Assembly: GCA_028826165.1 (NCBI GenBank)
Contig: JAPDFW010000131.1
Span: 1 to 64,000, forward strand
From: Anaeramoeba ignava BMAN
Lineage: Eukaryota; Protista; Anaeramoebae
Length of the DNA: 64,000 nucleotides
Reading direction: 5' to 3'
Under the pieces are notes generated by a model. The model was not told the origin of the DNA, made no database searches, and saw only the letters and a list, made by a program, of their open reading frames with translations. The position numbers and the translations under genes are program-made. Shown piece after piece: positions 5,845 to 46,569 of the stretch. Position 1 is the first letter of the stretch. Each line of letters opens with the position of its first letter.

Positions 5845-8800
5845 ATGAATTTTGAGGAATCAAAACTAAATTCACATCTTCAAGAGTTATTTTCAGAAAT
5901 AGAAAAAGAATTTAAATTATTATGGAATGAAAATCAAGAATGTAAATAAAACAAAATCAAAAACAAAACAAAACAAAACAAAACAATAAAATAAAAAAAT
6001 TTTTTTTTGAATTTATTTAGTAAAAAAGAAAATAGATTCATTTTATAATTCAGATACAAAACCAAAATCTTTAAAAAAGACTCGATGGGTATAAACAATT
6101 TATAATAAAATTTATTTAGAAAATTATTTAGAAAATTATTTAGAAAATTATTTAGAAAATTTATAATTAAATTTATAATTAAATTTATAATTAAATTTAT
6201 AATTAAATTTATAATAATATTTATAATTAAATATATAATTAAATTTATTTCAAAATTTATAACTAAATTTATATCAAAATTTATAATTAAATTTATAATT
6301 AAATTTATATCAAAATTTATATCAAAATTTATAACAAAATTTATAATTAAATATATAATTAAATTTATATCAAAATTTATAATTAAATTTATAATTAAAT
6401 TTATAATTAAATTTATAATTATATATATAATTAAATATATAATTAAATTTATATCAAAATTTATAATTAAATTTATAATTAAATTTATAATTAAATTTAT
6501 ATCAAAATTTATAATTAAATATATAATTAAATTTATATCAAAATTTATATCAAAATTTAAAATAATATTTATAATTATATTTATAATTATATTTATAATT
6601 AAATTTATAATTAAATTTATAATTAAATTTATAATTAAATTTATAATTAAATTTATAATTAAATTTATAATTAAATTTATAATTAAATTTATATCAAAAT
6701 TTAAAATAATATTTATAATTAAATTTATAATTAAATTTATAATTAAATTTATAATTAAATTTATAATTAAATTTATAATTAAATTTATATCAAAATTTAT
6801 AATTAAATTTATATCAAAATTTATAATTAAATTTATAATTAAATTTATAATTAAATTTATAATTAAATTTATATCAAAATTTATAACAAAATTTATAATT
6901 AAATTACAGTTCTCAAAATCAACAACAACACAAAAATGGGATATTATCCACAATTTTTGTTTCCACCGAGACATAGTTTGGGAAGTAACACCACATCCCC
7001 AAATCACAAATATATTTGGATCATCATCAGCAGATCGAATAGTTCGAATCTGGGATCACATGAGCAAAAAAACAACGAACATTTATACAGGACACAAGGG
7101 ATCAGTGAATTCAATTCGATTCCATCCAAAAGAATACAACATTTGCTGCACTTCTTCAGGGGATAAAACATGCCACATTTGGAAATATGAAAACTCAATC
7201 AATTCCAATCAAGAAGAAGAAAAAAACATTCAAAATTCGCTCAATAACAACGCAAATATTCAACAACAACAAGATATTATTGAAGCGATCCAAAACGAGA
7301 ACTTGATGGACAACAGCGACGATGATAATCTTGTTAATATCAGCGAAATTTATGTGCATTCAAGCAATTCAACAACAAGTGAAGATGAAATGGATTATCA
7401 AGAAATGAACCAATTTGTAAATCGTCCTGAACATGTTGACTTTGTTTGGGGAAGCGTATTAAATACTGAGGATGAGCGGGAAATCGACACAGAAATCAAA
7501 CAAGCAAATAAATATATTGAATCACAAGAAAACAAAGAAAACAAGGAAATCAAAGAAGATGAGAAAAAAATGGATCAAAATTTTTCATTTGAAGATTATC
7601 GATCACCAAATTCACCTCCTTTTGTAGTTTTGCAAAATATCTTGCCTCAAGAATCCAAAGAGAAACCTGAAAATATCATCAGCTCTCCTCTTGTTGAATT
7701 AAAAGGCCATAAAAATGCTGTCACTGCTGCAGATTTTCTTTTCGGTTCAGGTGACACCATCGTTACTAGCTCTCTCGATTCCACTCTTAAGCTTTGGACC
7801 ATTGAAAGTGGCAATGCTCGTTTGATAAGCACTCTTGTTGAGCACCAAGCTCCTATTTTGAATGTTGTTACTCATCATAAAGAACCTTTGATTCTTTCTT
7901 CTTCGAAAGATACTACTTTTAGATTATGGGATTTAAGAACTAAATCTAGTTCTGTTATTATTTTTAATGCTCATACTGCGTACTTATTAATATTCAAATA
8001 ATTTTATAAATAATTTTATAAATAATTTTATAAATAATTTTATATTTAATTTTATATTTAATTTTATAAATAATTTTATAAATAATTTTATAAATAATTT
8101 TATAAATAATTTTATAATTAATTTAATAAATAATTTTATAATTAATTTTATAATTAATTTTATATTTAATTTTATAAATAATTTTATAAATAATTTTATA
8201 AATAATTTAATAAATAATTTTATAAATAATTTTATATTTAATTTTATAAATAATTTTATATTTAATTTTATAAATAATTTTATAAATAATTTTATATTTA
8301 ATTTTTATAATTAATTTTATAAATAATTTAATAATTAATTTTATATTTAATTTTATAAATAATTTTATATTTAATTTAATAAATAATTTTATAAATAATT
8401 TAATAAATAATTTTTATAAATAATTTTATAAATAATTTTATAAATAATTTTATAAATAATTTTATAAATAATTTTATAAATAATTTTATAAATAATTTTA
8501 TAAATAATTTTATAATTAATTTTATAAATAATTTTATAATTAATTTTATAATTAATTTTATAATTAATTTTATAAATAATTTTATAATTAATATTGTAAA
8601 TAATTTTATAAATAATTTTTATATTTAATTTTATAAATAATTTAATAAATAATTTTATATTTAATTTTATAATTAATTTTTATATTTAATTTTATAAATA
8701 ATTTTATATTTAATTTTTATAAATAATTTTATAAATAATTTTATAATTAATTTTATAAATAATTTTATAAATAATTTTATAATTAATTTTATAAATAATT

Positions 8801-10289
8801 TTATAAATAATTTTATAAATAATTTTTATAAATAATTTTTATAATTAATTTTATAAATAATTTTATAAATAATTTTATAATTAATTTTATAAATAATTTT
8901 ATAAATAATTTTATAAATAATTTTATAAATAATTTTATAAATAATTTTATAAATAATTTTTATAATTAATTTTATAAATAATTTAATAAATAATTTTATA
9001 AATAATTTTATATTTAATTTTATAAATAATTTAATAAATAATTTTATAAATAATTTTATAAATAATTTTATAAATAATTTTATAAATAATTTTATATTTA
9101 ATTTTATAATTAATTTTATAAATAATTTTATAAATAATTTTATAAATAATTTTATATTTAATTTTATAATTAATTTTATAAATAATTTTATATTTAATTT
9201 TATATTTAATTTTAATATATAATTTTATATTTAATTTTATAAATAATTTTATAAATAATTTTATTAATAATTTTATAAATAATTTAATAAATAATTTTAT
9301 AAATAATTTTATAAATAATTTTATAAATAATTTTATAAATAATTTTATAAATAATTTTTATATTTAATTTTATAAATAATTTTATAATTAATTTAATAAA
9401 TAATTTTTATAAATAATTTAATAAATAATTTAATAATTAATTTAATAAATAATTTTATATTTAATTTTATAAATAATTTTATAAATAATATTATAAATAA
9501 TTTTATAATTAATTTTATAAATAATTTTATAAATAATTTTATAAATAATTTTATAAATAATATTATATTTAATTTTATAAATAATTTTATAAATAATTTT
9601 ATATTTAATTTTATAAATAATTTTATAAATAATTTTATAAATAATTTTATAATTAATTTTATAAATAATTTTATAAATAATTTTATAATTAATTTTATAA
9701 ATAATTTTATAAATAATTTTATAAATAATTTTATATTTAATTTTATATTTAATTTTATAAATAATTTAATAAATAATTTTATATTTAATTTTATAAATAA
9801 TTTAATAAATAATTTTATAAATAATTTTATAAATAATATTATAAATAATTTTATATTTAATTTTATAAATAATTTAATAAATAATTTTATAAATAATTTT
9901 ATATTTAATTTTTGTTTGCAAATAGACCTGTTCGGACATCACTTTTTGCACCTAAAAATGATTATATTGTTAGTGGAGGTGATGATAAAACTGTAAAAAT
10001 TTGGGATCAAAGAATTAACAAAGAACCAATAGCTTCAATTCATTGTGTTTCTGGAATTAATAAAATATCAATATCTCCACAAACATCTCAAATATTAACT
10101 CCTTTAGATAAAAATTTTGGAAGAATTTATGATTTAAGTGGGAAAGTAATTGGAAAACTTAAAGCACCAAAAACAAAACAAACTTCAATGTTATGTTGTT
10201 CTGCTTGGGATGCAAATGAAACTAAAATAATGACTGGTGGTTCTGATTCTAATATTTCTATGTGGGAACCAATAAATATTACAAATTAA
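5845..10289 (+). CDS. WDR37: WD40-repeat protein, WDR37-like (4 exons)
   Basis: Exons 5845-5941, 6021-6088, 6910-7979, 9926-10289 join in frame through GT-AG introns. N-terminal coiled coil (LQELFSEIEKEFKLLWNENQEL), then HRDIVWEV, GHKGSVNSIRFHP and further WD repeats. Confidence 0.85.
6089..6909 (+). repeat. Intronic 12-mer array (ATAATTAAATTT)n
   Basis: Fills WDR37 intron 2. Confidence 0.95.
7980..9925 (+). repeat. Intronic 12-mer array (ATAAATAATTTT)n, ~1.9 kb
   Basis: Fills WDR37 intron 3; almost purely A/T. Confidence 0.95.
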
Positions 10290-19853: not shown

Positions 19854-20063
19854 GCAAATGATTTTTTCTTCTTTTTTTTTTGTAAAGGAAAAAAAAATTT
19901 AAATTAAATTAAATTAAAATTTAAATAAAAATTTAAATAAAAATTCAATAAAAATTTAAATAAAAATTTTTTTCATTTTTCATTTTTCATTTTGTTCAAT
20001 TTTTCTTTATTTTCTTTATTTTGTTTGTTGTTATTTTTTTTTTGATTAATTTTTTTTTTAAAA

Positions 20064-24796
<4,733 letters not shown>

Positions 24797-24947: not shown

Positions 24948-26096
24948 ATGAAAGAGTCTTCACAATCAAGTTATTTAAATTTAGTAGTTGTTATTCTTTT
25001 TATTCTTGCTTCTTTTGTATTCGTTTATTTTGGTGATTCAAATAATCAAAATCAAAATCAAAATCAAAATCAAAATCAAAATCAAAATCAAATTAAGAAT
25101 GAAAAAGAAAAAGAAAAAGAAATTAAGAAAGAAAATGAAAAAGAAAAAGAAATTAAGAAAGAAAATGAAAATCAAATTCGAGATGAAATTCATATTAAAA
25201 AGTTAAATGAGAATGAAATTAAAAACAAAGAAATTGCCAAAAAAATTAACAAAGATTGGAAACCATTGAATGTTTTAGAAAACAAAAAGAAATGGAATTT
25301 GGAAAATAAAAGAATTTGTGTTTTAATGGTTGATAATCGGAAATTAGAATATCATTTCAATATTTCAGATGAAGAAAAACCAATTCCTTATCATATTTCA
25401 AGTGTTTATTCAAATTATTTATATTCAGAATATCATCAATATGATTTTTACAGAATGGATTTTTCAGAAAAAAAGGATGATAAACATTATTTTCCAAAAG
25501 AATTTGAAGAACCAGAAGATGAATCAAGAACATTTCATTGGAATAAATTATTAGGAATATATCAAATGTTGGATTATTTTGATTATGATATTGTGATGTA
25601 TCTTGATAGTGATTCAGTTTTTTCCGATTTTGAAAAATCAATTGAGGAATTTCTTTATGAAAATGTGGAATATTCAGAAAGTGTATCTCTGATACTAACC
25701 AGAGATTTGGATTGTGCAGTAGATTTTGTGAATACTGGAGTGATGATTTTTGTTAAGAATGATTTTGCAAAAAAAATGATTATTGATTGGTATAATTTTC
25801 CTTTAAAACAGAATGAATTCAGATGGTCTTTAAATAATTGGGGATGGGATCAAGTAGTTATGGGTCAATATATTTTCAAGAATGAACCTTGGAAATCACA
25901 TATTGCTATTCTTCATCATCTTACTATGAATAGTCCTAATGGTCGTTTTGTTAAGCATTATTGGGGATTGACAACAGAAGTAAGAAATAAGCATATTTCT
26001 TCTGTTTTATTTTATAATTTTTTTCTTTATAATCATTTGCTTTACAAAAAAGATATTTTGGATTTGGATTCGGATTCTTCTATTTTTCTTTTTTGA
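24948..26096 (+). CDS. Type II membrane glycosyltransferase, GT34 (GMA12/MNN10-like)
   Basis: ATG at 24948 (MKESSQ…), N-terminal TM helix, then WNKL, YLDSDS (DxD), NTGVMIF and WDQ motifs. Confidence 0.85.
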   Translation: MKESSQSSYLNLVVVILFILASFVFVYFGDSNNQNQNQNQNQNQNQNQIKNEKEKEKEIKKENEKEKEIKKENENQIRDEIHIKKLNENEIKNKEIAKKINKDWKPLNVLENKKKWNLENKRICVLMVDNRKLEYHFNISDEEKPIPYHISSVYSNYLYSEYHQYDFYRMDFSEKKDDKHYFPKEFEEPEDESRTFHWNKLLGIYQMLDYFDYDIVMYLDSDSVFSDFEKSIEEFLYENVEYSESVSLILTRDLDCAVDFVNTGVMIFVKNDFAKKMIIDWYNFPLKQNEFRWSLNNWGWDQVVMGQYIFKNEPWKSHIAILHHLTMNSPNGRFVKHYWGLTTEVRNKHISSVLFYNFFLYNHLLYKKDILDLDSDSSIFLF

Positions 26097-26139
26097 TTTT
26101 TTTTTCCATTGAATAAATATGGATGAGAAGAACTTTAAT

Positions 26140-27897
26140 TTTTTAAATAAATAATATTATTTTAATTTTAGAATATTTTCTAAAATAATTAAAATAAAAA
26201 TAATTTAAATTTAATCTAAATTTAATCTTATTGAAAATAATTAATATAATTTGAAATCAAAATTGAAAATATTTTAATCAAATTTTTTAAATAATTAATA
26301 TTTTAATTAATTTTAATTTTAGAATATTTTTTAAAATAATTAAAATAAAAATAATTTAAATTTAATCTAAATTTAATCTTATTGAAAATATTTAATTTAA
26401 TTTTAAATCAAAATTGAAAATATTTTAATCAAATTTTTTAAATAAATAATATTATTTTAATTAATTTTAATTTTAGAATATTTTTAAAATAATTAAAATA
26501 AAAATAATTTAAATTTAATCTAAATTTAATCTTATTGAAAAATTTAATATAATTTTAAATCAAAATTGAAAATATTTTAATTAAATTTTTAAATAATTAA
26601 TATTATTTTAATTAATTTTAATTTTAGAATATTTTTAAAATAATTAAAATAGAAATTATTTAAATTTAATCTAAATTTAATCTTATTGAAAATATTTAAT
26701 TTAAATTTGAAATCAAAATTGAAAATATTTTAATCAAATTTTTAAATAATTAATATTATTTTAATTAATTTTAATTTTGGAATATTTTCTAAAATAATTA
26801 AAATAGAAATAATTTAAATTTAATCTAAATTTAATCTTATTGAAAATATTTAATTTAATTTTAAATCAAAATTGAAAATATTTTAATCTAATTTTTAAAT
26901 AATTAATATTATTTTAATTTTAGAATATTTTTAAAATAATTAAAATAGAAATTATTTAAATTTAATCTAAATTTAATCTTATTGAAAATATTTAATTTAA
27001 ATTTAAATCAAAATTGAAAATATTTTAATCAAATTTTTAAATAAATAATATTATTTTAATTAGTTTTAATTTTAGAATATTTTCTAAAATAATTAAAATA
27101 AAAATTATTTTAAATTTAATTTTAAATTTAATCTTATTGAAAATAATTAATATAATTTTAAATCAAAATTGAAAATATTTTAATCAAATTTTTTAAATAA
27201 ATAATATTATTTTAATTATGGAATATTTTTAAAATAATTAAAATAGAAATTATTTAAATTTAATCTAAATTTAATCTTATTGAAAATAATTAATTTAATT
27301 TTAAATCAAAATTGAAAATATTTTAATCAAATTTTTAAATAAATAATATTATTTTAATTAAATTTAATTTTAGAATATTTTCTAAAATAATTAAAATAAA
27401 AATGATTTAAATTTAATCTAAATTTAATCTTATTGAAAATATTTAATTTAAATTTAAATCAAAATTGAAAATATTTTAATCAAATTTTTAAATAAATAAT
27501 ATTATTTTAATTAATTTTAATTTTGAAATATTTTCTAAAATAATTAAAATAAAAATAATTTAAATTTAATCTAAATTTAATCTTATTGAAAATATTTAAT
27601 ATAATTTTAAATCAAAATTGAAAATATTTTAATTAAATTTTTAAATAAATAATATTATTTTTATTAGTTTTAATTTTAGAATATTTTTTAAAATAATTAA
27701 AATAAAAATTATTTAAATTTAATCTAAATTTAATCTTATTGAAAATAATTAATTTAAATTTAAATCAAAATTGAAAATATTTTAATCAAATTTTTTAAAT
27801 AATTAATATTATTTTAATTAATTTTAATTTTGAAATATTTTTAAAATAATTAAAATAAAAATTATTTAAATTTAATCTAAATTTAATCTTATTGAAA
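26140..27897. repeat. Intergenic tandem satellite, ~153-bp unit x12
   Basis: AATCTTATTGAAA recurs at 26224, 26375, 26528, 26679, 26833, 26975, 27130, 27273, 27426, 27579, 27732 and 27885. Confidence 0.95.
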
Positions 27898-27969
27898 AAA
27901 AAAGAAAAAGAAAAAAAAAATTTTTTTTTGAAATTTTCATTTTTTTTTCTCAAAATAAAATAATATACA

Positions 27970-30584
27970 ATGCAAGAAAATAAACAATTAATAAAAAAAA
28001 CAGTTTTGTACACAATATCGATAGTAATATTTATAGAATTAATGATAACATTTATAGTAGGGATCACAGTATTAGTGATAAAAAACAAAAACCAAACAGA
28101 AACAATAGAAATAACGGAAAATAAAAAATTTTCGAAAAATGTAATTATGATAATTCCAGATGGATTTGGAATATCAAGTCAAGTATTAGCAAGAGAATAT
28201 GAAGGAGTTGATTTTTTGCCTTTGGATCAAATCCAAAAAGGAAATTCACATACAAAATCTGCTTCTAATCTTATTACTGATTCTGCTGCTGGTGGTACTG
28301 CTTTATCTTGTGGTATTAAAACTGATAATGGTGAAATTGCTATGGATCCGCAAGGCAAACCTTGTTTGACTTTGTTGGAAGCTGCAATGATTCATTCAAT
28401 GGCTACTGGAATCGTTGTTAAATCTAGATTAACTCATGGTAATTAAAATTATAAATTAAAATTTAAATCAAATTAAAATTAAAATTAAAATTAAAATTAA
28501 AATTATAAATTAAAATTAAAATTAAAATTAAAATCAAAATTTAAAATTAAAATTAAAAATTAAAATTAAAATTAAAATTAAAATTAAAATTCATTTATAA
28601 AATTAAAATCAAAATTAAAATCAAAATTAAAATTAAAAATCAAATCAAAATCAAAATTAAAATTAAAATTAAAATTAAAATTAAAATTAAAATTAAAATT
28701 AAAATCGGATAAAAATTAAAATTAAAATTAAAATTAAAATTAAAATTAAAATTAAAAATTAAAATTAAAATTAAAATTAAAATGAAAATTAAAATTAAAA
28801 TTCATTTAAAATTAAAATTAAAATCAAAATTAAAATCCAAATTTAAAATTAAAATTAAAAATTAAAATTAAAATTAAAATCAAAATTAAAATTAAAATTT
28901 AAAAAAATTAAAATTAAAATTAAAATTAAAATTAAAATTAAAATTAAAATTAAATTTATAAAATTAAAATTAAAATTATAATTAAAATTAAAATTAAAAT
29001 TAAAATTAAAATTAAAATTAAATTTAAAATCAAAATTAAAATTATAATTAAAATTAAAATTAATTTTAAAAAAATTTTAAAAATAATTAGTTTAATTAAA
29101 ATTAAAATTAAAATTAAAATTAAAATTAAAATTAAAATTGGATAAAAATTAAAATTAAAATTAAAATTAAAATCGAAATTAAAATTAAAATTGGATAAAA
29201 AATTAAAATTAAAATTAAAATTAAAATTAAAATTAAAATTAAAATTAAAATTAAAATTAAAATTAAAATTAAAATTAAAATTAAAATTAAAATTAAAATT
29301 AAATTTAAAATTAAATTTAAAATTAAAATTAAAATTAAAATCGGATAAAAAATTAAAATTAAAATTAAAATTAAAATTAAAATTAAAATTAAAATTAAAA
29401 TTAAAATTAAAATTAAAATTCATTTAAAATTAAAATTAAAATTAAAATTAAAATTAAAATTAAAATCGGATAAAAAATTAAAATTGGATAAAAAATTAAA
29501 ATCGGATAAAAAATAAACAGCAACACCAGCATCATTTTCAGCACATCAATTAAGCCGATCACAAGAACTTGACATTGCAGTTCAACAATTAAATTCTGAT
29601 TTTGGAAATATTGATGTATTATTTGGGGGAGGAAGAGACATGTTTATACCAGTAAGCATGGGAGGACAACGAACAGATGGAAGAAATTTAGAAACAGAAG
29701 CAGAAGAAAAAGGGTACACAGTGATACATACATCAAGCGAGCTCAACAACTCAAATCTAAGCACACCAGTCTTGGGACTCTTCCAAATGGAAGCATATCC
29801 ATATATTATTGATAGACAAAACTTCACTGATCCACCTACTTTGGAAAGTACTTCAAATAGGGCTCTTCAATTACTTTCCCAGAAGGCACAACAACAAGAC
29901 GTCTATGGGTTCTTCTTGATGATAGAGTGTTCCTTGATCGATTTTTGTGCGCACCAGAACGACCCTGCTTGCCAAGTCAGAGAAACAGTGCAATGCAATG
30001 AAGTTGTCAAAAATATGAAGAATTTCATTGATTCAAATCAAGATGATTCGCTTTTAGTAATCGTTGCAGATCACGAAACAGGCGGTTTATCTCTTGGCTC
30101 CACTGTTGTTTTGGATGGGAAAAATGTGTCTGATTATGTTTACTATCCTGAATTACTCAAGTCTGTTAACAAATCAAGTTATTTAATGACTGAATTAGTT
30201 TATAATAATCAATCCACATTTGAAGAAGTTTTATTGAATTATGCCAATATCTCAAATTTAACTCAATCCGAATTGGATAATCTTAATTGGGCTGTGGATT
30301 CTCTTTCTTTTGATAATTTGAACCATGCTTTGAGTCGTGTGATTTCGCAAAGAGCGTATCTTGGTTGGACTACTTATGCACATACTGGTGTTGATGTTAT
30401 GATTTATGCTCATGGTTCTCATTCTGAGGATTTTGTTGGTTCAATGGATAATACTGATGTTGCTAAAAATATCGCTAATTTTTTACAGTTTGATCTTGTT
30501 AAAGATAGAGTATTTGTTGAAAATTCTGAAATGAGTTATTATTCAACTGATTCTCCAAAAATTAATGATTCTTTTCATCCATAA
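27970..30584 (+). CDS. Membrane-anchored alkaline phosphatase (PHO8-like; 2 exons)
   Basis: Exons 27970-28438 and 29521-30584. TM helix, then IPDG, TDSAAGGTA (catalytic Ser), spliced THATPA, IDFCAH, ADHETGG and HTGVDV. The intron is (AAAATT)n. Confidence 0.95.
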
Positions 30585-33600: not shown

Positions 33601-35504
33601 TGATTTCAAATTTCAGATGAAATAGATCAAATCATCATAAAAATAAATAACAAACCAGCAGCAGCACCACCAGCAACAAAATCCATTTTTTCTCTATCAT
33701 TTCTAAACAATCTCAAAATTTTCAAATCAGCATTCCAAGTAGAAGATTTTCCTTGAGTAATACCAGCAGCAATAACAGCACCTGAATGAATCATTGGACC
33801 TTCTTTTCCAACAAGAAGACCACCAGCAACAGAACAAAGCACACCAACAGCTTTTGAAAATAAAGTCTTAATACGAACCAGTCGAGGAATTTTTATTCCA
33901 TTTAAATAACATTTGATTTCTGAAATTCCACTTCCTCTTGCGACTGGTTCAAGATATGCAACTAAAAATCCTGATATTGCTACAAGAACTAAATTGATAG
34001 CTATATATACAAAAAGTGGTCTTATATAGCATCGTAAACTAGAACTTGTTTCACATCCAGATGGTATTGCTAATTCGGTCAAATTGAATTTCCATCCAGA
34101 TATTTTGTATACAAAAAAATCAATTAAAAATGCTACAAATCCTGTTAAAAATCCTATTAATGCTGCTAAAACCCATCGAAGAGAATGCAATAAAACTTGA
34201 CTCTTTTAAATTTTGAATTTGAATTTGAAATTGAAATTAAAATTAAAATTGAATTTGAATTTGAAATTGAAATTGAAATTGAAATTGAAATTGAAATTGA
34301 ATTTGAAATTGAATTTGAAATTGAAATTGAAATTGAAATATTTGAAATTGAAATTGATTTAGAAATTGAATTTGAAATTGAATTTGAAATTGAAATTGAA
34401 TTTAAAATTGAATTTGAAATTGAAATTGAATTTAAAATTGAAATTGAATTTAAAATTGAAATTGAAATTGAAATTGAAATTGAATTTAAAATTGAAATTG
34501 AAATTGAAATTGAATTTGAATTTAAAATTGAATTTGAAATTGAATTTGAAATTGAATTTGAAATTGAATTTGAAATTGAAATTGAAATTGAATTTGAATT
34601 TGAATTTTAAATTGAATTTGAAATTGAAATTGAAATTGAAATTGAATTTGAAATTGAATTTGAAATTGAATTTGAAATTGAATTTGAAATTGAATTTGAA
34701 ATTGATTTAGAAATTGAAATTGAAATTGAAATTGAATTTAAAATTGAAATTGAAATTGAATTTGAAATTGAATTTGAATTTAAAATTGAAATTGAATTTG
34801 AAATTGAAATTGAAATTGAAATTGAATTTGAAATTGAAATTGAAATTGAATTTGAAATTGAAATTGAAATTGAAATTGAATTTGAATTTAAAATTGAAAT
34901 TGAATTTGAAATTGAATTTAAAATTGAAATTAAAATTGAAATTGAAATTGAAATTGAATTTGAAATTGAAATTGAAATTGAAATTGAATTTGAATTTGAA
35001 TTTAAAATTGAAATTAAAATTGAAATTGAAATTGAAATTGAAATTGAAATTGAATTTGATTTAGAAATTGAATTTAAAATTGAAATTGAAATTGATTTAG
35101 AAATTGAATTTGAAATTAAAATTGAAATTGAAATTGAAATTGAAATTGAAATTGATTCAGAAGGTCAAATGAAAAGTTGAATATAAATTTGAATTTGTAA
35201 GTTTTAAAAAAAAAATTTTTTTTAAAAAGAAAAAGAAAGAAAAAAGTTTTGATTAGTTTTTTTTTTTCAAATTTTTTATTTAATTTTATATTTAAATTAT
35301 TTATTACTCCTCTTGATAATTTTGATTGCCATTCAAGTACAACTGAACTTTCATAAGTATCATAATTTAAACTTTCAAATTTTTGGATAATTTCTGGATT
35401 AATTTCCTTTTATTTTAAAAAATCGAATTTTTTTTTTTTAATTTAAAATTATTTAAAATTAAAAAATTATAAATAAAAAAATTTGATTTTACTTTAACCA
35501 ACAT
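30688..35504 (-). CDS. CLC-6/7-type Cl-/H+ antiporter with CBS domains (5 exons)
   Basis: Exons 35504-35493 (MLVK), 35406-35308 (FESLNYD), 34202-33656, 32764-31267, 30976-30688. Motifs GSGISE, GKEGP, GAPIGGVLFAMEE, PSGLFIP and two CBS domains. Confidence 0.93.
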
Positions 35505-35565: not shown

Positions 35566-35696
35566 AAAAAATGAAAAAATAAAAATTTTATTCCACTTTT
35601 ATTTTATTTGTTTATTTGTTTGTTTGAATTGAAATTAAAATTAAAATCTAAATTAGTTATTTTTATGTTTAGTTTTATGTTTATTTTTATTTAAAA
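35566..35696. repeat. Direct repeat, left copy
   Basis: AAAAAATGAAAAAATAAAAATTTTATTCCACTTTT…TTTGAATTGAAATTAAAA…TCTAAATTAGTTATTTTTATGTTT…TATTTAAAA matches 36251-36400 apart from slippage indels. Confidence 0.9.
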
Positions 35697-35859
35697 GAAT
35701 AAAAAAGGAGAAAAAAAATAAATTCTCCTTTATCCTTTTTGATCTATCCACTTTTAATTAAAATAAAAAGCAAAAAAATTTTATTTGAAATTATTTCATT
35801 TTTTTATTTACTTTTTTATTTACTTTTTTATTTACTTTTTTATTTACTTTTAAATTGAA

Positions 35860-36060
35860 ATGTCAGAAAAACCAAGAGTTACTCTTCACGGATTAGATGG
35901 AGAAACTGCAGAGTATTCAGTGAATGGGGATGGATACTTGAACCAATGGGGAGTGGATTGGCTTTGTGAGCATGGTTGGTTAAGTATTGAAGATGTTCCT
36001 GACGACGATAAGGTGAAAGTGTGGAGAGATGGTTCGCCAAGTTGATCTTTGGATAATTAA
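35860..36060 (+). CDS. Candidate novel 66-aa selenoprotein (Sec at TGA 36043-36045)
   Basis: MSEKPRVTLHGLDGETAEYSVNGDGYLNQWGVDWLCEHGWLSIEDVPDDDKVKVWRDGSPS-TGA-SLDN-TAA. The ORF is GC-richer than its flanks, has an upstream TTTCATTT at ~35794, and has a SECIS in the 3' UTR. Confidence 0.8.
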
Positions 36061-36080
36061 TTGTTCTTTTTTTAAAAAAA

Positions 36081-36166
36081 GATCTTTTTGAAGTTATTTA
36101 AATGATAAAACTCAACTAAACTGTTTTTCAGCTTTGAGTTTTTGAAAGAATTTCTTTAAAAAGATC
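36081..36166 (+). promoter_or_regulatory. SECIS element (eukaryotic type II)
   Basis: Helix 1 is GATCTTTTTGAAG (36081-93) paired with CTTTAAAAAGATC (36154-66). The core is A-TGAT (36102-06) with TGAA (36143-46). Helix 2 is AAAACTCAA paired with TTGAGTTTT. Unpaired AAA (36118-20) lies 11 nt from the core, followed by the mini-stem CTG-TTTTT-CAG. Confidence 0.88.
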
Positions 36167-36250
36167 ACAAAAACAACAAAAACAAAAAAAAGAACTTTAT
36201 TTGATTTCTATTTTTCCTCTTTTTTTTGATTTTTTTGCTTTTTTTGAAAT

Positions 36251-36400
36251 AAAAAATGAAAAAATAAAAATTTTATTCCACTTTTTATTTGTTTGTTTGT
36301 TTGAATTGAAATTAAAATCTAAATTAGTTATTTTTATGTTTATTTTTATGTTTATTTTTATGTTTATTTTTATTTATTCAAAATTTATTTTTATTTAAAA
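36251..36400. repeat. Direct repeat, right copy (3' flank of the GT61 gene)
   Basis: Matches 35566-35696. Confidence 0.9.
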
Positions 36401-36401
36401 T

Positions 36402-38890
36402 TTATTGTAAATCTTTGAAATGATAATCTTCATCCAAAGCTTTATTTAAAACCTTCTCAACTCTTTTCAAAGGAACCTTCAAATTTTTGCCTTTTGATTC
36501 AATAAAAACTCTCCAATATCGACAACCAGTAGTATGAGAAATCCAATAAATAATAGCATCAGTTTTTCGAGAAGATTTCGGGAAAAATTCAATAACATTT
36601 GGATGAGATAAACTGAATAAAACATTATAAAAAGCGCCACCATGCAATCCAATTACAATTTTAGCATTTGAAAAATATTCAACTAATTCTTTTAAATCAG
36701 TATGTTCTTTATGAGAAAAAATTTTCAAATCGTCTCCAAATCGTGCGGATAAATACGCCGTGATTTGCTTATCATTTACAACATTTCTTTCATTGTAAGT
36801 ATTTTTTCTTGGCAAATAAATAACATATTTTGGATTTGGATTTCGGAACTTTTCAAAATTCTCAGTTTCCAAAATAAATCTCAACAAAAAATTTTTGACT
36901 TCTGGAAGCTTTCTAGGATTTTCCCAGGGCAAGTTGCACGGAATAAACAAGTTATCGGCTTTGTAGGAATGAATATTATCGACAAACTCGACCGTAACAT
37001 TAAAGTCTGTTTTAACAAATTGCCAAAATTGATAGAGAACAGGGTCTCTTGGTCTCAAACCGACAATGGTCCAACCTTGATCCTTTATGAAGGGTCTAAT
37101 CTGAACTAACAAACAAGCAGTACGATCGATCCAGTGCTGGAACTGCGCGCCCCATTCTGTATTTACTAAGACAACTTTGTCAAAGTGTCTTGGCTTGTGC
37201 AAAATCGGGTTTTCCAAGTTATGAATCGTTGTATTTGGACGACAAATAGGGACGTCCCTAAATTTCCTATTTTGAACAACCGTCAAGTTCCCGTACATGA
37301 TGTCTGTGTAGTTGAAATACGCTTTTCTTGTTTTCTTGTCGATCACTTGATTATAACGGGGTTTTTCTAGTTTGATAAAGAGATCAAATGATTCTTCATC
37401 TATAAAATGTGGTGCTTCTAATGTAAATGGTTCATATTTGATTTGATAGTCGATTTGATGTTCGGATACTATTTTTTTCGTTATTGGTAATTGTTTTCCA
37501 TATCCTGGATCATCGATGTATTTTAGATCTTCTTCTGTTTGAAATAAATATGGATTTTCATATTCCTCAAAAAGAGTGTCGAATTGAAAATCGACTGATC
37601 TATTATTTGTAGAACCTTTTTTGGAATTAATTTTAATTTTTAAATTTGATTTTATAAATGAATTTTGATTTTAATTTTGATTTTGATTTTGGATTTGATT
37701 TTATAAATGAATTTTAATTTTGATTTTGATTTTGATTTTGATTTTAATTTTGATTTTAATTTTATAAATGAATTTTAATTTTGATTTTAAATATAATTTT
37801 GATTTTGATTTTATAAATGAATTTTAATTTTGATTTAAATTTTGATTTTCATTTTAATTTTCATTTTCATTTTCATTTAAATTTTGATTTTGATTTTGAT
37901 TTTATAAATGAATTTTAATTTTATAAATGAATTTTGATTTTGATTTTAATTTTAATTTTAATTTTGATTTTGATTTTGATTTTGATTTTGATTTTAATTT
38001 TGATTTTGATTTTAAATATAATTTTGATTTTGATTTTATAAATGAATTTTAATTTTGATTTAAATTTTGATTTTCATTTTAATTTTCATTTTCATTTTCA
38101 TTTAAATTTTGATTTTGATTTTGATTTTAAATATAATTTTGATTTTGATTTTGATTTTAATTTTAATTTTGATTTTGATTTTCATTTTGATTTAAATTTT
38201 GATTTTGGTTTTAATTTTAATTTTAATTTTAATTTTAATTTTAATTTTAATTTTAATTTTAATTTTAATTTTAATTTTAATTTTAATTTTAATTTTAATT
38301 TTAATTTTAATTTTAATTTTAATTTTAATTTTCATTTTAATTTTGATTTTAAATTTTAATTTTAATTTTCATTTTCATTTTAAATTTAATTTTAATTTTC
38401 ATTTTAATTTTGATTTTGATTTTGATTTTCATTTTAATTTTGATTTTCATTTTAACTTTGATTTTGATTTTAATTTTAATTTTGATTTTGATTTTAAATA
38501 TAAATTTGATTTTCATTTTGATTTTAATTTTAATTTTGATTTTAATTTTGATTTTGATTTTGATTTTCATTTTAATTTTAATTTTAATTTTAAATTTGAT
38601 TTTAATTTTAATTTTAATTTTCATTTTAATTTTGATTTTAATTTTAATTTTGATTTTAATTTTAATTTTAATTTTGATTTTGATTTTGATTTTAATTTTA
38701 ATTTTAATATTAAATTTTCATTTTCATTTTAATATTAAATTTTACTTAAAAAAGGGAAAGAAGAATGCGTTAAATAGTGTAAAAATAAAAATATTAAAAA
38801 AATTATAATTGAATATAATTTCGCATCAACACTTTCAAATTTCTTTAAAATTGATTGAATAAAAATAAAAAAACGTATTTTAAAACTCAT
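36402..38890 (-). CDS. Glycosyltransferase family 61 (DUF563)-like type II membrane protein (2 exons)
   Basis: Exons 38890-38746 (MSFKIRFF…, TM helix) and 37615-36402. Motifs FQHW, YLPR…RNVVN, FSNAKIVIGLHGGAFYNVLF and VIEFFP. Confidence 0.85.
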
Positions 38891-43619: not shown

Positions 43620-45938
43620 AAATTTATTTAAATTTTTAATAAATAAAATATTTTAATATTTTAATAATAAAATTGAATATAAAATTATATTTTTAAATTA
43701 ATTTATAAATTAAATATTAAATTAAATCTATTTTCATTCTTTATATTTCTATATGTTTAAATATTTAATAAATAAAATATTTAAATCTAAATTAATAAAA
43801 TAATATTTTAATAATAGAATTAAATATAAAATTATATTTTTAAATTAATTTATAAATTAAATATTAAATTAAATCTATTCTCATTTTTTATATTTATATG
43901 TTTAAATATTTAATAAATAAAATATTTAAATTTAAATTAATAAAATAATATTTTAATAATAGAATTAAATATAAAATTATATTTTTAAGTTAATTTATAA
44001 ATTAAATATTAAATTAAATCTATTCTCATTTTTTTATATTTATATGTTAAAATATTTAATAAAGAAAATATTTAAATCTAAATTAATAAAATAATATTTT
44101 AATAATAAAAATTGAATATAAAATTATATTTTTAAATTAATTTATAAATTAAATATTAAATTAAATCTATTTTCATTCTTTATATTTATATGTTTAAATA
44201 TTTAATAAATAAAATATTTAAATCTAAATTAATAAAATAATATTTTAATAATAAAATTAAATATAAAATTATATTTTTAAATTAATTTATAAATTAGATA
44301 TTAAATTAAATCTATTTTCATTTTTTATATTTATATGTTAAATATTTAATAAAGAAAATGTTTAAATCTAAATTAATAAAATAATATTTTAATAATAAAA
44401 TTAAATATAAAATTATATTTTTAAATTAATTTATAAATTAATTATTAAATTAAATCTATTTTCATTTTTTATATTTATATGTTAAATATTTAATAAAGAA
44501 AATATTTAAATCTAAATTAATAAAATAATATTTTAATAATAAAATTAGATATAAAATTATATTTTTAAATTAATTTATAAATTAGATATTAAATTAAATC
44601 TATTTTCATTTTTATATTTATATGTTTAAATATTTAATAAATAAAATATTTAAATATAAATTAATAAAATAATATTTTAATAATAAAATTGAATATAAAA
44701 TTATATTTTTAAATTAATTTATAAATTAAATATTAAATTAAATCTATTCTCATTCTTTATATTTATATGTTTAAATATTTAATAAATAAAATATTTAAAT
44801 CTAAATTAATAAATTATTATTTTAATAATAGAATTGGATATAAAATTATATTTTTAAATTGATTTATAAATTAGATATTAAATTAAATCTATTTTCATTT
44901 TTATATTTCTTTTGTTTAAATATTTAATAAATAAAATATTTAAATCAAATTAATAAATTAATATTTTAATAATAAAATTGAATATAAAATTATATTTTTA
45001 AATTAATTTATAAATTAAATATTAAATTAAATCTATTTTCATTCTTTATATTTATATGTTTAAATATTTAATAAATAAAAATATTTAAATTTAAATTAAT
45101 AAAATAATATTTTAATAATAAAATTAAATATAAAATTATATTTTTAAATTAATTTATAAATTAAATATTAAATTAAATCTATTCTCATTCTTTATATTTA
45201 TATGTTTAAATGTTTAATAAATAAAATATTTAAATCTAAATTAATAAAATAATATTTTAATAATAAAATTAAATATAAAATTATATTTTTAAATTGATTT
45301 ATAAATTAAATATTAAATTAAATCTATTCTCATTTTTATATTTATATGTTTAAATATTTAATAAATAAAATATTTAAATCTAAATTAATAAAATAATATT
45401 TTAATAATAGAATTGGATATAAAATTATATTTTTAAGTTAATTTATAAATTAGATATTAAATTAAATCTATTCTTATTCTTTATATTTATATGTTAAATG
45501 TTTAATAAATAAAATATTTAAATCTAAATTAATAAAATAATATTTTAATAATAGAATTGGATATAAAATTATATTTTTAAATTGATTTATAAATTAAATA
45601 TTAAATTAAATCTATTCTCATTCTTTATATTTATATGTTTAAATATTTAATAAATAAAATATTTAAATCTAAATCAATAAAATAATATTTTAATAATAAA
45701 ATTAGATATAAAATTATATTTTTAAATTAATTTATAAATTAGATATTAAATTAAATCTATTCTTATTCTTTATATTTATATGTTTAAATGTTTAATAAAT
45801 AAAATATTTAAATCTAAATCAATAAAATAATATTTTAATAATAAAATTAGATATAAAATTATATTTTTAAATTAATTTATAAATTAGATATTAAATTAAA
45901 TCTATTCTCATTCTTTATATTTATATGTTTAAATATTT
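43620..45938. repeat. Intergenic tandem satellite, ~145-bp unit x16
   Basis: AAATCTATT recurs from 43724 to 45898 at 144-147-bp spacing. Confidence 0.95.
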
Positions 45939-46569
45939 TTCCTTTTTTTTTAATTGATCATAAAAAGAAATTTGTTTTTTTTTAATTAGTTTTTCATTTT
46001 ATTCATTTTTATTAATTTTGATCTAAAAAAATCAAACTAAGAAAAAATTCTTGTTTAATTTTAAATTTGCTTTGGTGGATTTGAGTTGTTTATTTAATTC
46101 AAAATTCAATTCAAAAAGAAAAAAAAAGAAAAAAGATCAAAATGAATAAAAAATTCTTTTTGCTTCATTTTTGTTTTAATAAAATCACAAAAGGAAAAAT
46201 GAATTAAAAATTTAATTGTGATTCTTTGTTGGATTTACTATTTATTCAATTTATTCAATTTATCATTTTTTTTCTTCTTCTTTCCAATTTTAATTTTATT
46301 AAAATTTAATAAAAATTTAAAAAAATTCCATCAAAGATCTTCATCATTCTTCTTTTTTAAAACCAAAAAAAAAAAAGCAAAATTCAAATTACAAAATCAA
46401 AAATTAACCAAAAAAAAAACTAAAAAAAAAATTTAAAAAGATTTTTCATTTGTTTCTTTGCATTTTTTTTTTCTATTTTTGTTATTTTTGTGCAAAAATT
46501 CTTCTTAAATTATTATTATTTTTTTTAATTTTTTTTTATCATTAATTTTGAATCTTTTAAAAAAAAAAA

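Follow-up and report, generated by a model that had tools for sequence, protein, structure and literature searches.

We conclude that positions 35860-36166 on the forward strand of the window most probably hold a real, unannotated selenoprotein gene of Anaeramoeba ignava, in which a UGA codon is read as Sec under the direction of a SECIS element. The window is the whole 64,000-nucleotide stretch that was analyzed (contig JAPDFW010000131.1, positions 1 to 64,000). A selenoprotein had been proposed in a sequence-only reading of this DNA, and the Sec machinery of the genome, the SECIS models and a paralog with its own UGA and hairpin all speak in favor of that proposal. The coding part of the candidate gene is composed as follows.

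35860-36042, forward strand: 61 sense codons of the candidate selenoprotein gene (ORF listing, homologs and AF2 model).
36043-36045, forward strand: in-frame UGA, proposed Sec residue 62 (sequence; the paralog likewise has a C-terminal TGA).
36046-36060, forward strand: four post-UGA codons TCT TTG GAT AAT (Ser-Leu-Asp-Asn) and the TAA stop at 36058-36060.

The ORF starts with an ATG at 35860, and its predicted read-through product is 66 residues long. When the sequence was re-read, the coordinates given earlier for this ORF, with its 61 codons, TGA, four further codons and TAA, proved to be exact. TGA is a minority stop here, ending only one of the 11 long ORFs in the window. The extension that follows the UGA is too short, with four codons here and two in the paralog, for coding conservation to be scored, and an extension of such length is expected by chance in 80% A+T sequence.

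Downstream of the TAA, the RNA is predicted to fold into a complete form-2 SECIS hairpin, the parts of which are listed here from the base to the apex.

36081-36166, forward strand: complete form-2 SECIS hairpin (MFE fold, Rfam SECIS_1, cross-detection by model R1, covariation).
36081-36093 with 36154-36166, forward strand: outer helix 1, 13 bp (MFE fold).
36096-36099 with 36148-36151, forward strand: inner helix 1, 4 bp (MFE fold).
36102-36105, forward strand: AUGA, 5' half of the tandem G.A core (fold; in register with the AUGA in the SECIS elements of the SPS2, SelW-like and Rdx genes).
36144-36145, forward strand: GA, 3' half of the core (sequence and fold).
36106 with 36143, forward strand: U.U mismatch directly after the AUGA (fold).
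36107-36115 with 36134-36142 (region 36107-36142), forward strand: helix 2, 9 bp, perfect (fold).
Apical part, forward strand: CU, unpaired AAA at 36118-36120, mini-stem CUG/CAG (36121-36123 with 36129-36131) and a U5 loop.

The unconstrained MFE fold of 36066-36172 has an energy of -24.6 kcal/mol (z -3.2), and two of 200 shuffled sequences fold as well. This fold reproduces the hairpin first drawn from the sequence, with its 13-bp helix 1, core, 9-bp helix 2, AAA and CUG/CAG mini-stem. The 13 bp assigned to helix 1 in that drawing are all there, to which the fold adds the 4-bp inner helix 1, absent from the earlier list and separated from the outer helix by a small internal loop. The core is left unpaired (AAAUGAU opposite UGAAA), with AUGA opposite GA and both aligned to the core columns of Rfam SECIS_1. 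Form-2 elements have a helix 2 of ~9-12 bp and an unpaired AA(A) some ~10-13 nt 3' of the core; in this hairpin the corresponding values are 9 bp and 12 nt, since 12 nt lie between the last A of AUGA and the AAA, and not 11 as had been counted. The apical mini-stem is found both here and in the paralog, and helix 1 below the internal loop shows covariation (13 + 4 bp in the window, 7 + 6 + 4 bp in the paralog).

As for its placement, the hairpin begins 20 nt past the TAA on the coding strand, a position compatible with a 3' UTR. The spacing between UGA and core had been described as short, at ~57 nt. Short it is, although the distance between UGA and AUGA is 56 nt, and it is 53 nt in the paralog. 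Martin et al. are reported to have found in 1996 that UGA-SECIS spacings of 51-111 nt work in mammalian constructs, and both of our values sit at the lower edge of this range. The conservation of a short spacing in both paralogs argues that this geometry is tolerated or selected.

The paralog itself, at G000:C61:353536-353721 on the minus strand, was the one relative to emerge when the 61-residue ORF was compared with all six frames of the genome. With its hairpin it spans the following segment.

G000:C61:353408-353721 (L008, 1349-1656), minus strand: second family member, CDS and SECIS (six-frame search, fold).

The second gene has 62 codons, followed by TGA, AAT AAC and TAA, so that its post-UGA extension reads Asn-Asn and both loci finish with Asn and then TAA. 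Its protein is 32% identical to that of the window, with which it shares an MSxK start and an identical CEHGW motif, and its tail before the UGA reads CPCPKK. The hairpin that follows folds into the same architecture. The sequence-only reading had looked to homologs for a verdict, and here is one, in the same genome, with a TGA at the equivalent C-terminal position and a conserved hairpin. A profile search with the whole family returned only these two members in the genome, each with the Cys and the TGA.

The two loci have been conserved very unevenly. DNA identity is 49% in the CDS and 38-51% in the flanks, and reaches 89% in the upper SECIS, that is, inner helix 1, core, helix 2 and apical part. 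The sequence of outer helix 1 differs between the loci, and compensatory changes keep it paired in both. Judging from these identities, the two paralogs appear to have diverged anciently. An upper SECIS at 89% identity against a CDS at 49%, together with a helix 1 that is rewritten and still paired, argues that the hairpin is neither a product of chance nor a relic.

For the candidate UGA to be read as Sec, as the sequence-only reading had recognized, the genome must hold the Sec machinery, and we searched the A. ignava assembly (42.8 Mb) for it. A tRNA-Sec with the anticodon TCA (70 bits, above the Rfam cut-off), SepSecS (404 bits), a Sec-containing SPS2 and eEFSec are all present. The catalytic motif of SPS2 (KG-U-SCK) contains an in-frame TGA, and a SECIS of its own lies 3' of the gene. 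The eEFSec on contig C24 has human eEFSec as its best PDB match (E 2.4e-26), with EF-Tu and eIF2-gamma far behind; the first SelB-like match had been another protein, eEF1A, and was rejected. PSTK gave a weak match only in the genome search. The following list gives the SPS2 and eEFSec genes together with further loci that carry the marks of known selenoprotein families.

G000:C64:1028999-1031640 (L004, L005): SPS2 gene, with its SECIS at C64:1031569-1031630 (fold z -5.7).
G000:C24:178580-180790 (L055), minus strand: eEFSec gene.
G000:C71:143338-143734 (L023): SelW-like gene, single exon, with the redox motif CLV-UGA and a form-2 SECIS ~100 nt after the TAA.
G000:C15:55435-55837 and G000:C137:507346-507683: Rdx-family loci, each with a SECIS.
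G000:C66:505578-505891 (L038), minus strand: Rdx-like exon starting with an in-frame TGA (KG-U-RQNG...), 65 codons to the TAA, with a SECIS-like element after it (37 bits with model R2).

In the C15 and C137 loci the Pfam match begins after the CxxU position, so that the first exon probably lies elsewhere; an upstream exon of the Rdx-like locus on C66 was not found. Taken together, the machinery and these selenoprotein loci indicate that the genome decodes UGA as Sec. Some of these genes are broken up by simple repeats. The introns of SPS2 measure ~0.2-0.75 kb, and at least the ~0.75-kb one is filled with a TTTAA-type microsatellite, and eEFSec has at least three exons, separated by introns made of (AAATTC)-type microsatellite. 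The single glutathione peroxidase homolog (G000:C104:1005992-1006300) has no in-frame stop and is presumably a Cys form.

The SECIS elements of these loci provide positive controls from the same genome. We built a covariance model, R1, from the two candidate hairpins alone and ran it unfiltered on small loci around the SECIS elements of known families, with the following scores.

SelW-like SECIS: 41.1 bits, full length, in register.
SPS2 SECIS: 20.3 bits, full length, in register.
Rdx SECIS on C15: 17.2 bits, full length, in register.
Rdx SECIS on C137: 10.3 bits, full length, in register.

All four elements are thus matched with AUGA, UAAA and UGA(A/U) in register. When default filters were applied to whole loci, R1 missed the SPS2 SECIS. 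A model-guided alignment was used, MAFFT having failed to bring the SPS2 SECIS and the candidates together. In the resulting five-element alignment, 97.5% of the cells are standard pairs and 15 of the 16 pairs change on both sides, figures that describe an alignment fitted to the model; when the partners are slid by one to three columns, pairing falls to 35-51%.

On short loci, the Rfam SECIS_1 scores are 27.0 bits for the candidate (E 0.005), 26.5 for the paralog, and 39.5, 28.1, 26.4 and 20.1 for the positive controls. The 27 bits of the candidate lie below the Rfam gathering score of 35, a cut-off that only one of the four controls reaches. On a 701-nt segment (35700-36400) SECIS_1 returned no match even at E 10, a silence that is a filter artefact, because the same model matches the element in a 98-nt locus. 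By SECIS_1 score, the candidate elements are therefore indistinguishable from the controls of this genome, and the check with SECIS models suggested from the outset places the candidate, with SECIS_1 as with R1, at the level of those controls. The hairpin is more than chance, given a second locus with the same arrangement and a SECIS_1 E value of 0.005 in the small-locus search.

The likeness extends to structural detail. The SPS2, SelW-like and Rdx elements have, like the candidate, an AUGA core, a helix 2 of 8-11 bp, a (N)UAAA apical bulge and a mini-stem. A U-rich loop is common to the candidate and to the SPS2 and SelW-like elements, which also have the same layout of CUAAA and mini-stem. 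The candidate has the 3' context UGAA, as do all five of the other SECIS elements examined except the one on C137, which has UGAU. The candidate pair differs from the SPS2, SelW-like and Rdx elements in the U.U mismatch after the core, where these have an A-U pair. It also differs in the distance from UGA to SECIS, which is ~55 nt in the pair versus roughly 300-450 nt in the SelW-like gene, where the UGA lies near the N terminus. A second model, R2, built from the five elements and run genome-wide, recovered the elements it was trained on, together with one more plausible element (the one on C66, at 37 bits) and three weaker matches. The R2 matches on C126, C68 and C93 lack the look of a SECIS and were rejected.

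The predicted protein is acidic, without a hydrophobic stretch or a CxxU, and has a single Cys, residue 36, within the CEHGW motif; the translation thus agrees with its first description as acidic, with one Cys, no TM helix and no CxxU. Searches were made with the 61-residue piece, as the four-residue tail is too short to search. The 61-residue ORF had no match in Pfam or in a word-based search of protein sequences, exact look-ups gave no record in the public protein collection for either of the small proteins, and two metagenome-contig scans found nothing. By contrast, an exhaustive HMMER search with the two paralogs against 1.84 billion representatives yielded 11 matches, eight of which are true relatives with E values from 1e-5 to 7e-20, and a family profile added five more.

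P0001-P0005, P0007, P0009, P0010 and P0132-P0136: relatives, an uncharacterized ~55-residue eukaryotic domain.

Some of these relatives are single small proteins of 57-67 residues, and others are N/Q-rich with two to four tandem units of ~55 residues. All come from metagenome or metatranscriptome contigs except for one partial record under a rotifer assembly, and none has a Pfam domain or a name. Identities are 25-41%, and the MSxKPxVT start is shared. The landmarks of the family alignment, beside the conserved N terminus, are DG, G, (W/F)L, HG, P and D(K/R). An AF2 model computed with this alignment has a mean pLDDT of 84.6 and predicts a β-hairpin (residues 6-10 and 16-21), a short strand and an α-helix (residues 29-38) that carries Cys36, with the last four residues disordered. 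Foldseek, VIA-align and ESM Atlas gave no match above noise. A SUMO/ubiquitin-like β-grasp was considered and rejected: a two-sequence profile matched a tandem SUMO2 chain with an E value of 0.0017, which rose to 0.086 with the 14-sequence family profile, and the structural comparisons by Foldseek and VIA-align lent the fold no support. The homologs, the conserved N terminus and the confident AF2 model together indicate that the coding sequence is real, and its similarities assign the gene to a family of uncharacterized ~55-residue eukaryotic domains with neither a Pfam entry nor a solved fold.

Within this family, the A. ignava pair stands apart in its candidate redox residues. Where the pair has the helix Cys, the relatives have N, D, R, A or S, and they read (D/E/S/N)HGG where the pair reads HGW; no relative has a C-terminal Sec tail. 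For the two relatives whose DNA was readable, the stop codons are TAA and TAG, and neither has a SECIS. Helix Cys and C-terminal UGA thus co-occur in both A. ignava members and in no other relative examined. A TGA or a Cys had been expected opposite residue 62 in homologs. The paralog supplies the TGA, whereas no family member has a Cys aligned with the Sec, at or near its position, and the C-terminal tails, which differ in length and sequence, cannot be aligned. The classic sign of a selenoprotein, a homolog with Cys in place of Sec, is hence lacking from this family. The suggestion of a new family holds in so far as no known selenoprotein family matches; more exactly, the two genes appear to be Sec-bearing members of an uncharacterized small-domain family in which the other members examined are not selenoproteins.

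The gene lies in very A+T-rich surroundings. The G+C content of the window is ~20%, with stretches below 7%, and it drops to 1.5-8% over kilobase-scale stretches (8001-10000, 20001-22000, 26001-28000 and 44001-46000). Microsatellite-like arrays, for example at 34197-35200 and 37927-38800, yield long artefactual ORFs of the (EI)n, (KL)n and (NF)n kind. Gene and SECIS are flanked by two copies of a direct repeat.

35566-35690, strand not assigned: AT-rich direct repeat of ~125 bp, upstream copy (repeat comparison).
36251-36361, strand not assigned: the same direct repeat, downstream copy (repeat comparison).

The copies are 88-97% identical to each other, and matches elsewhere in the genome are of low complexity and reach only 70-77%. 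A dispersed or mobile element was rejected on these grounds, the repeat looking like a local duplication of low-complexity DNA. On the minus strand, an ORF of the GT61 glycosyltransferase family (36402-37346) converges on the selenoprotein gene, and since its stop is 236 nt from the SECIS, the 3' UTRs of the opposite strands may overlap. Another ORF of the window is 100% identical to an annotated CLC chloride channel of A. ignava, with the next best match, from A. flamelloides, at 50%. No relative of the small protein was found in a 22-kb A. flamelloides region around the CLC ortholog, and the 10 kb on either side of that ortholog hold no relative and no SECIS, and hence no syntenic copy.

How else could these observations be read? 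Chance might have placed an ORF and a hairpin side by side in A+T-rich intergenic DNA that holds no gene. The ORF is indeed only 61 codons long, has no Pfam match and apparently has no public protein record, but significant eukaryotic homologs with a conserved N terminus, a confident structure model and a paralog of the same architecture leave this reading with next to no probability; homologs, family alignment and locus identities effectively refute it. If the gene is granted, its UGA could be a plain stop and the hairpin a relic SECIS, or an unrelated element acting in 3' UTR stability or localization, with no Sec inserted. The want of a Cys homolog at the Sec position and the very short post-UGA extension are in keeping with such a stop. 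However, a relic would not have stayed 89% identical while the CDS fell to 49%. Moreover, the hairpin bears the full SECIS signature, a model built from it and its paralog recovers bona fide SECIS elements and SECIS_1 scores it like the controls, and both paralogs end in TGA, the rarely used stop of the window. We therefore regard a plain stop as very improbable.

A third reading, which we find unlikely although it deserves more weight than a plain stop, accepts both the gene and a functional SECIS and supposes that recoding across ~55 nt is inefficient. In that case ribosomes would mostly make the 61-residue protein that stops at the UGA, and the version with Sec would be a minor isoform or one regulated by selenium. 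In favor of this reading, neither paralog has more than 56 nt between UGA and SECIS, and non-Sec relatives of 57-67 residues function without the tail. Yet the spacing and a near-identical core have been kept in paralogs that diverged anciently, which suggests a geometry that is selected and works, and the helix Cys, which is confined to the two members with a UGA, can be understood only if the Sec tail is produced. A selenoprotein gene whose UGA is recoded thus remains the preferred reading.

On the preferred reading of a recoded UGA, a single-exon gene would give rise to an mRNA encoding 61 residues, a UGA read as Sec62, Ser-Leu-Asp-Asn and the TAA stop. The hairpin would be transcribed as part of its 3' UTR, where, by analogy with other eukaryotes, the SECIS 56 nt past the UGA would recruit a SECIS-binding factor and eEFSec with Sec-tRNA(Sec), leading to Sec insertion. 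The product would be a small soluble domain in which a β-hairpin and a short strand combine with a helix, and its flexible C-terminal tail would carry the Sec. Since a helix Cys and a C-terminal Sec co-occur only in the two A. ignava members, we propose a Cys36-Sec62 couple; judging by the two sequences and by analogy, the most likely chemistry would be redox chemistry, in which Cys36 and Sec62 form a selenenylsulfide through the mobile tail, as in thioredoxin reductase or in tails of the SelK/SelS type.

Going further, we lean, with some hesitation, toward the idea that the two genes found a new selenoprotein family, in which a non-redox mini-domain gained a helix Cys and a Sec tail together, with a frozen upper SECIS and, at 53-56 nt, spacings among the shortest natural ones between UGA and SECIS. 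If this is true, it would speak either for a constraint on compact recoding that is specific to the family or for gene conversion of the SECIS, and this in a deep-branching anaerobe.

SECIS-directed recoding of UGA is a known mechanism; what is new is this protein family as a selenoprotein, and the lineage. In the literature searched we found no description of an Anaeramoebae selenoproteome. The A. ignava genome paper makes no mention of selenium (PMC11550330), and all that a 2026 preprint on A. pumila reports about Sec is a pair of tRNA-Sec genes. For metamonads, the literature searched reports SelW paralogs without detectable SECIS elements in Spironucleus (PMC2874811, PMC3916229) and a Sec synthesis pathway in Preaxostyla (PMC10703272), and nothing beyond these. 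With this gene and its paralog, the known selenoproteins would gain a family specific to one lineage. The pair would also join the SPS2, SelW-like and Rdx loci as Sec genes that the standard annotation of this genome has missed. Moreover, the pair offers a natural test of the minimum UGA-SECIS distance in eukaryotes, and, if the redox reading is true, would be a case of an existing small fold that acquires a Cys/Sec pair.

Among known systems, the SECIS elements of Dictyostelium discoideum are, like the candidate, of type II, leave an AAA unpaired and have a U-U mismatch directly after the core (Lobanov et al. 2007, PMC2375036). They have a UGUA before the core that the candidate lacks, and the host of the candidate is a metamonad-related anaerobe, not a dictyostelid.

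Membership in known selenoprotein families finds no support in the profile searches. PF10961 (SelK_SelG) has no match anywhere in the genome, and the candidate, with no Pfam match and no TM helix, does not qualify as a SelK or SelS; PF10262 (Rdx: SelW/SelT/SelH) matches three other loci of the genome and not this one. Protists have lineage-restricted selenoproteins, such as Sel1-Sel4 of Plasmodium and SelTryp of kinetoplastids, which are small or novel, confined to one lineage and were found only via their UGA and SECIS. The candidate resembles these in kind, and no sequence similarity to them surfaced in the exhaustive search of 1.84 billion representatives. With its 66 residues, it is unlike thioredoxin reductase, SelK and SelS in having no sequence relationship to them and in lacking a TM helix, a Gly-rich segment and an adjacent Cys-Sec dyad. 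Like thioredoxin reductase (GCUG), SelK and SelS, however, it has its candidate Sec a few residues from the C terminus, where the model predicts disorder; another part of the protein could plausibly supply a resolving Cys, and the Sec would be decoded through a SECIS in the 3' UTR.
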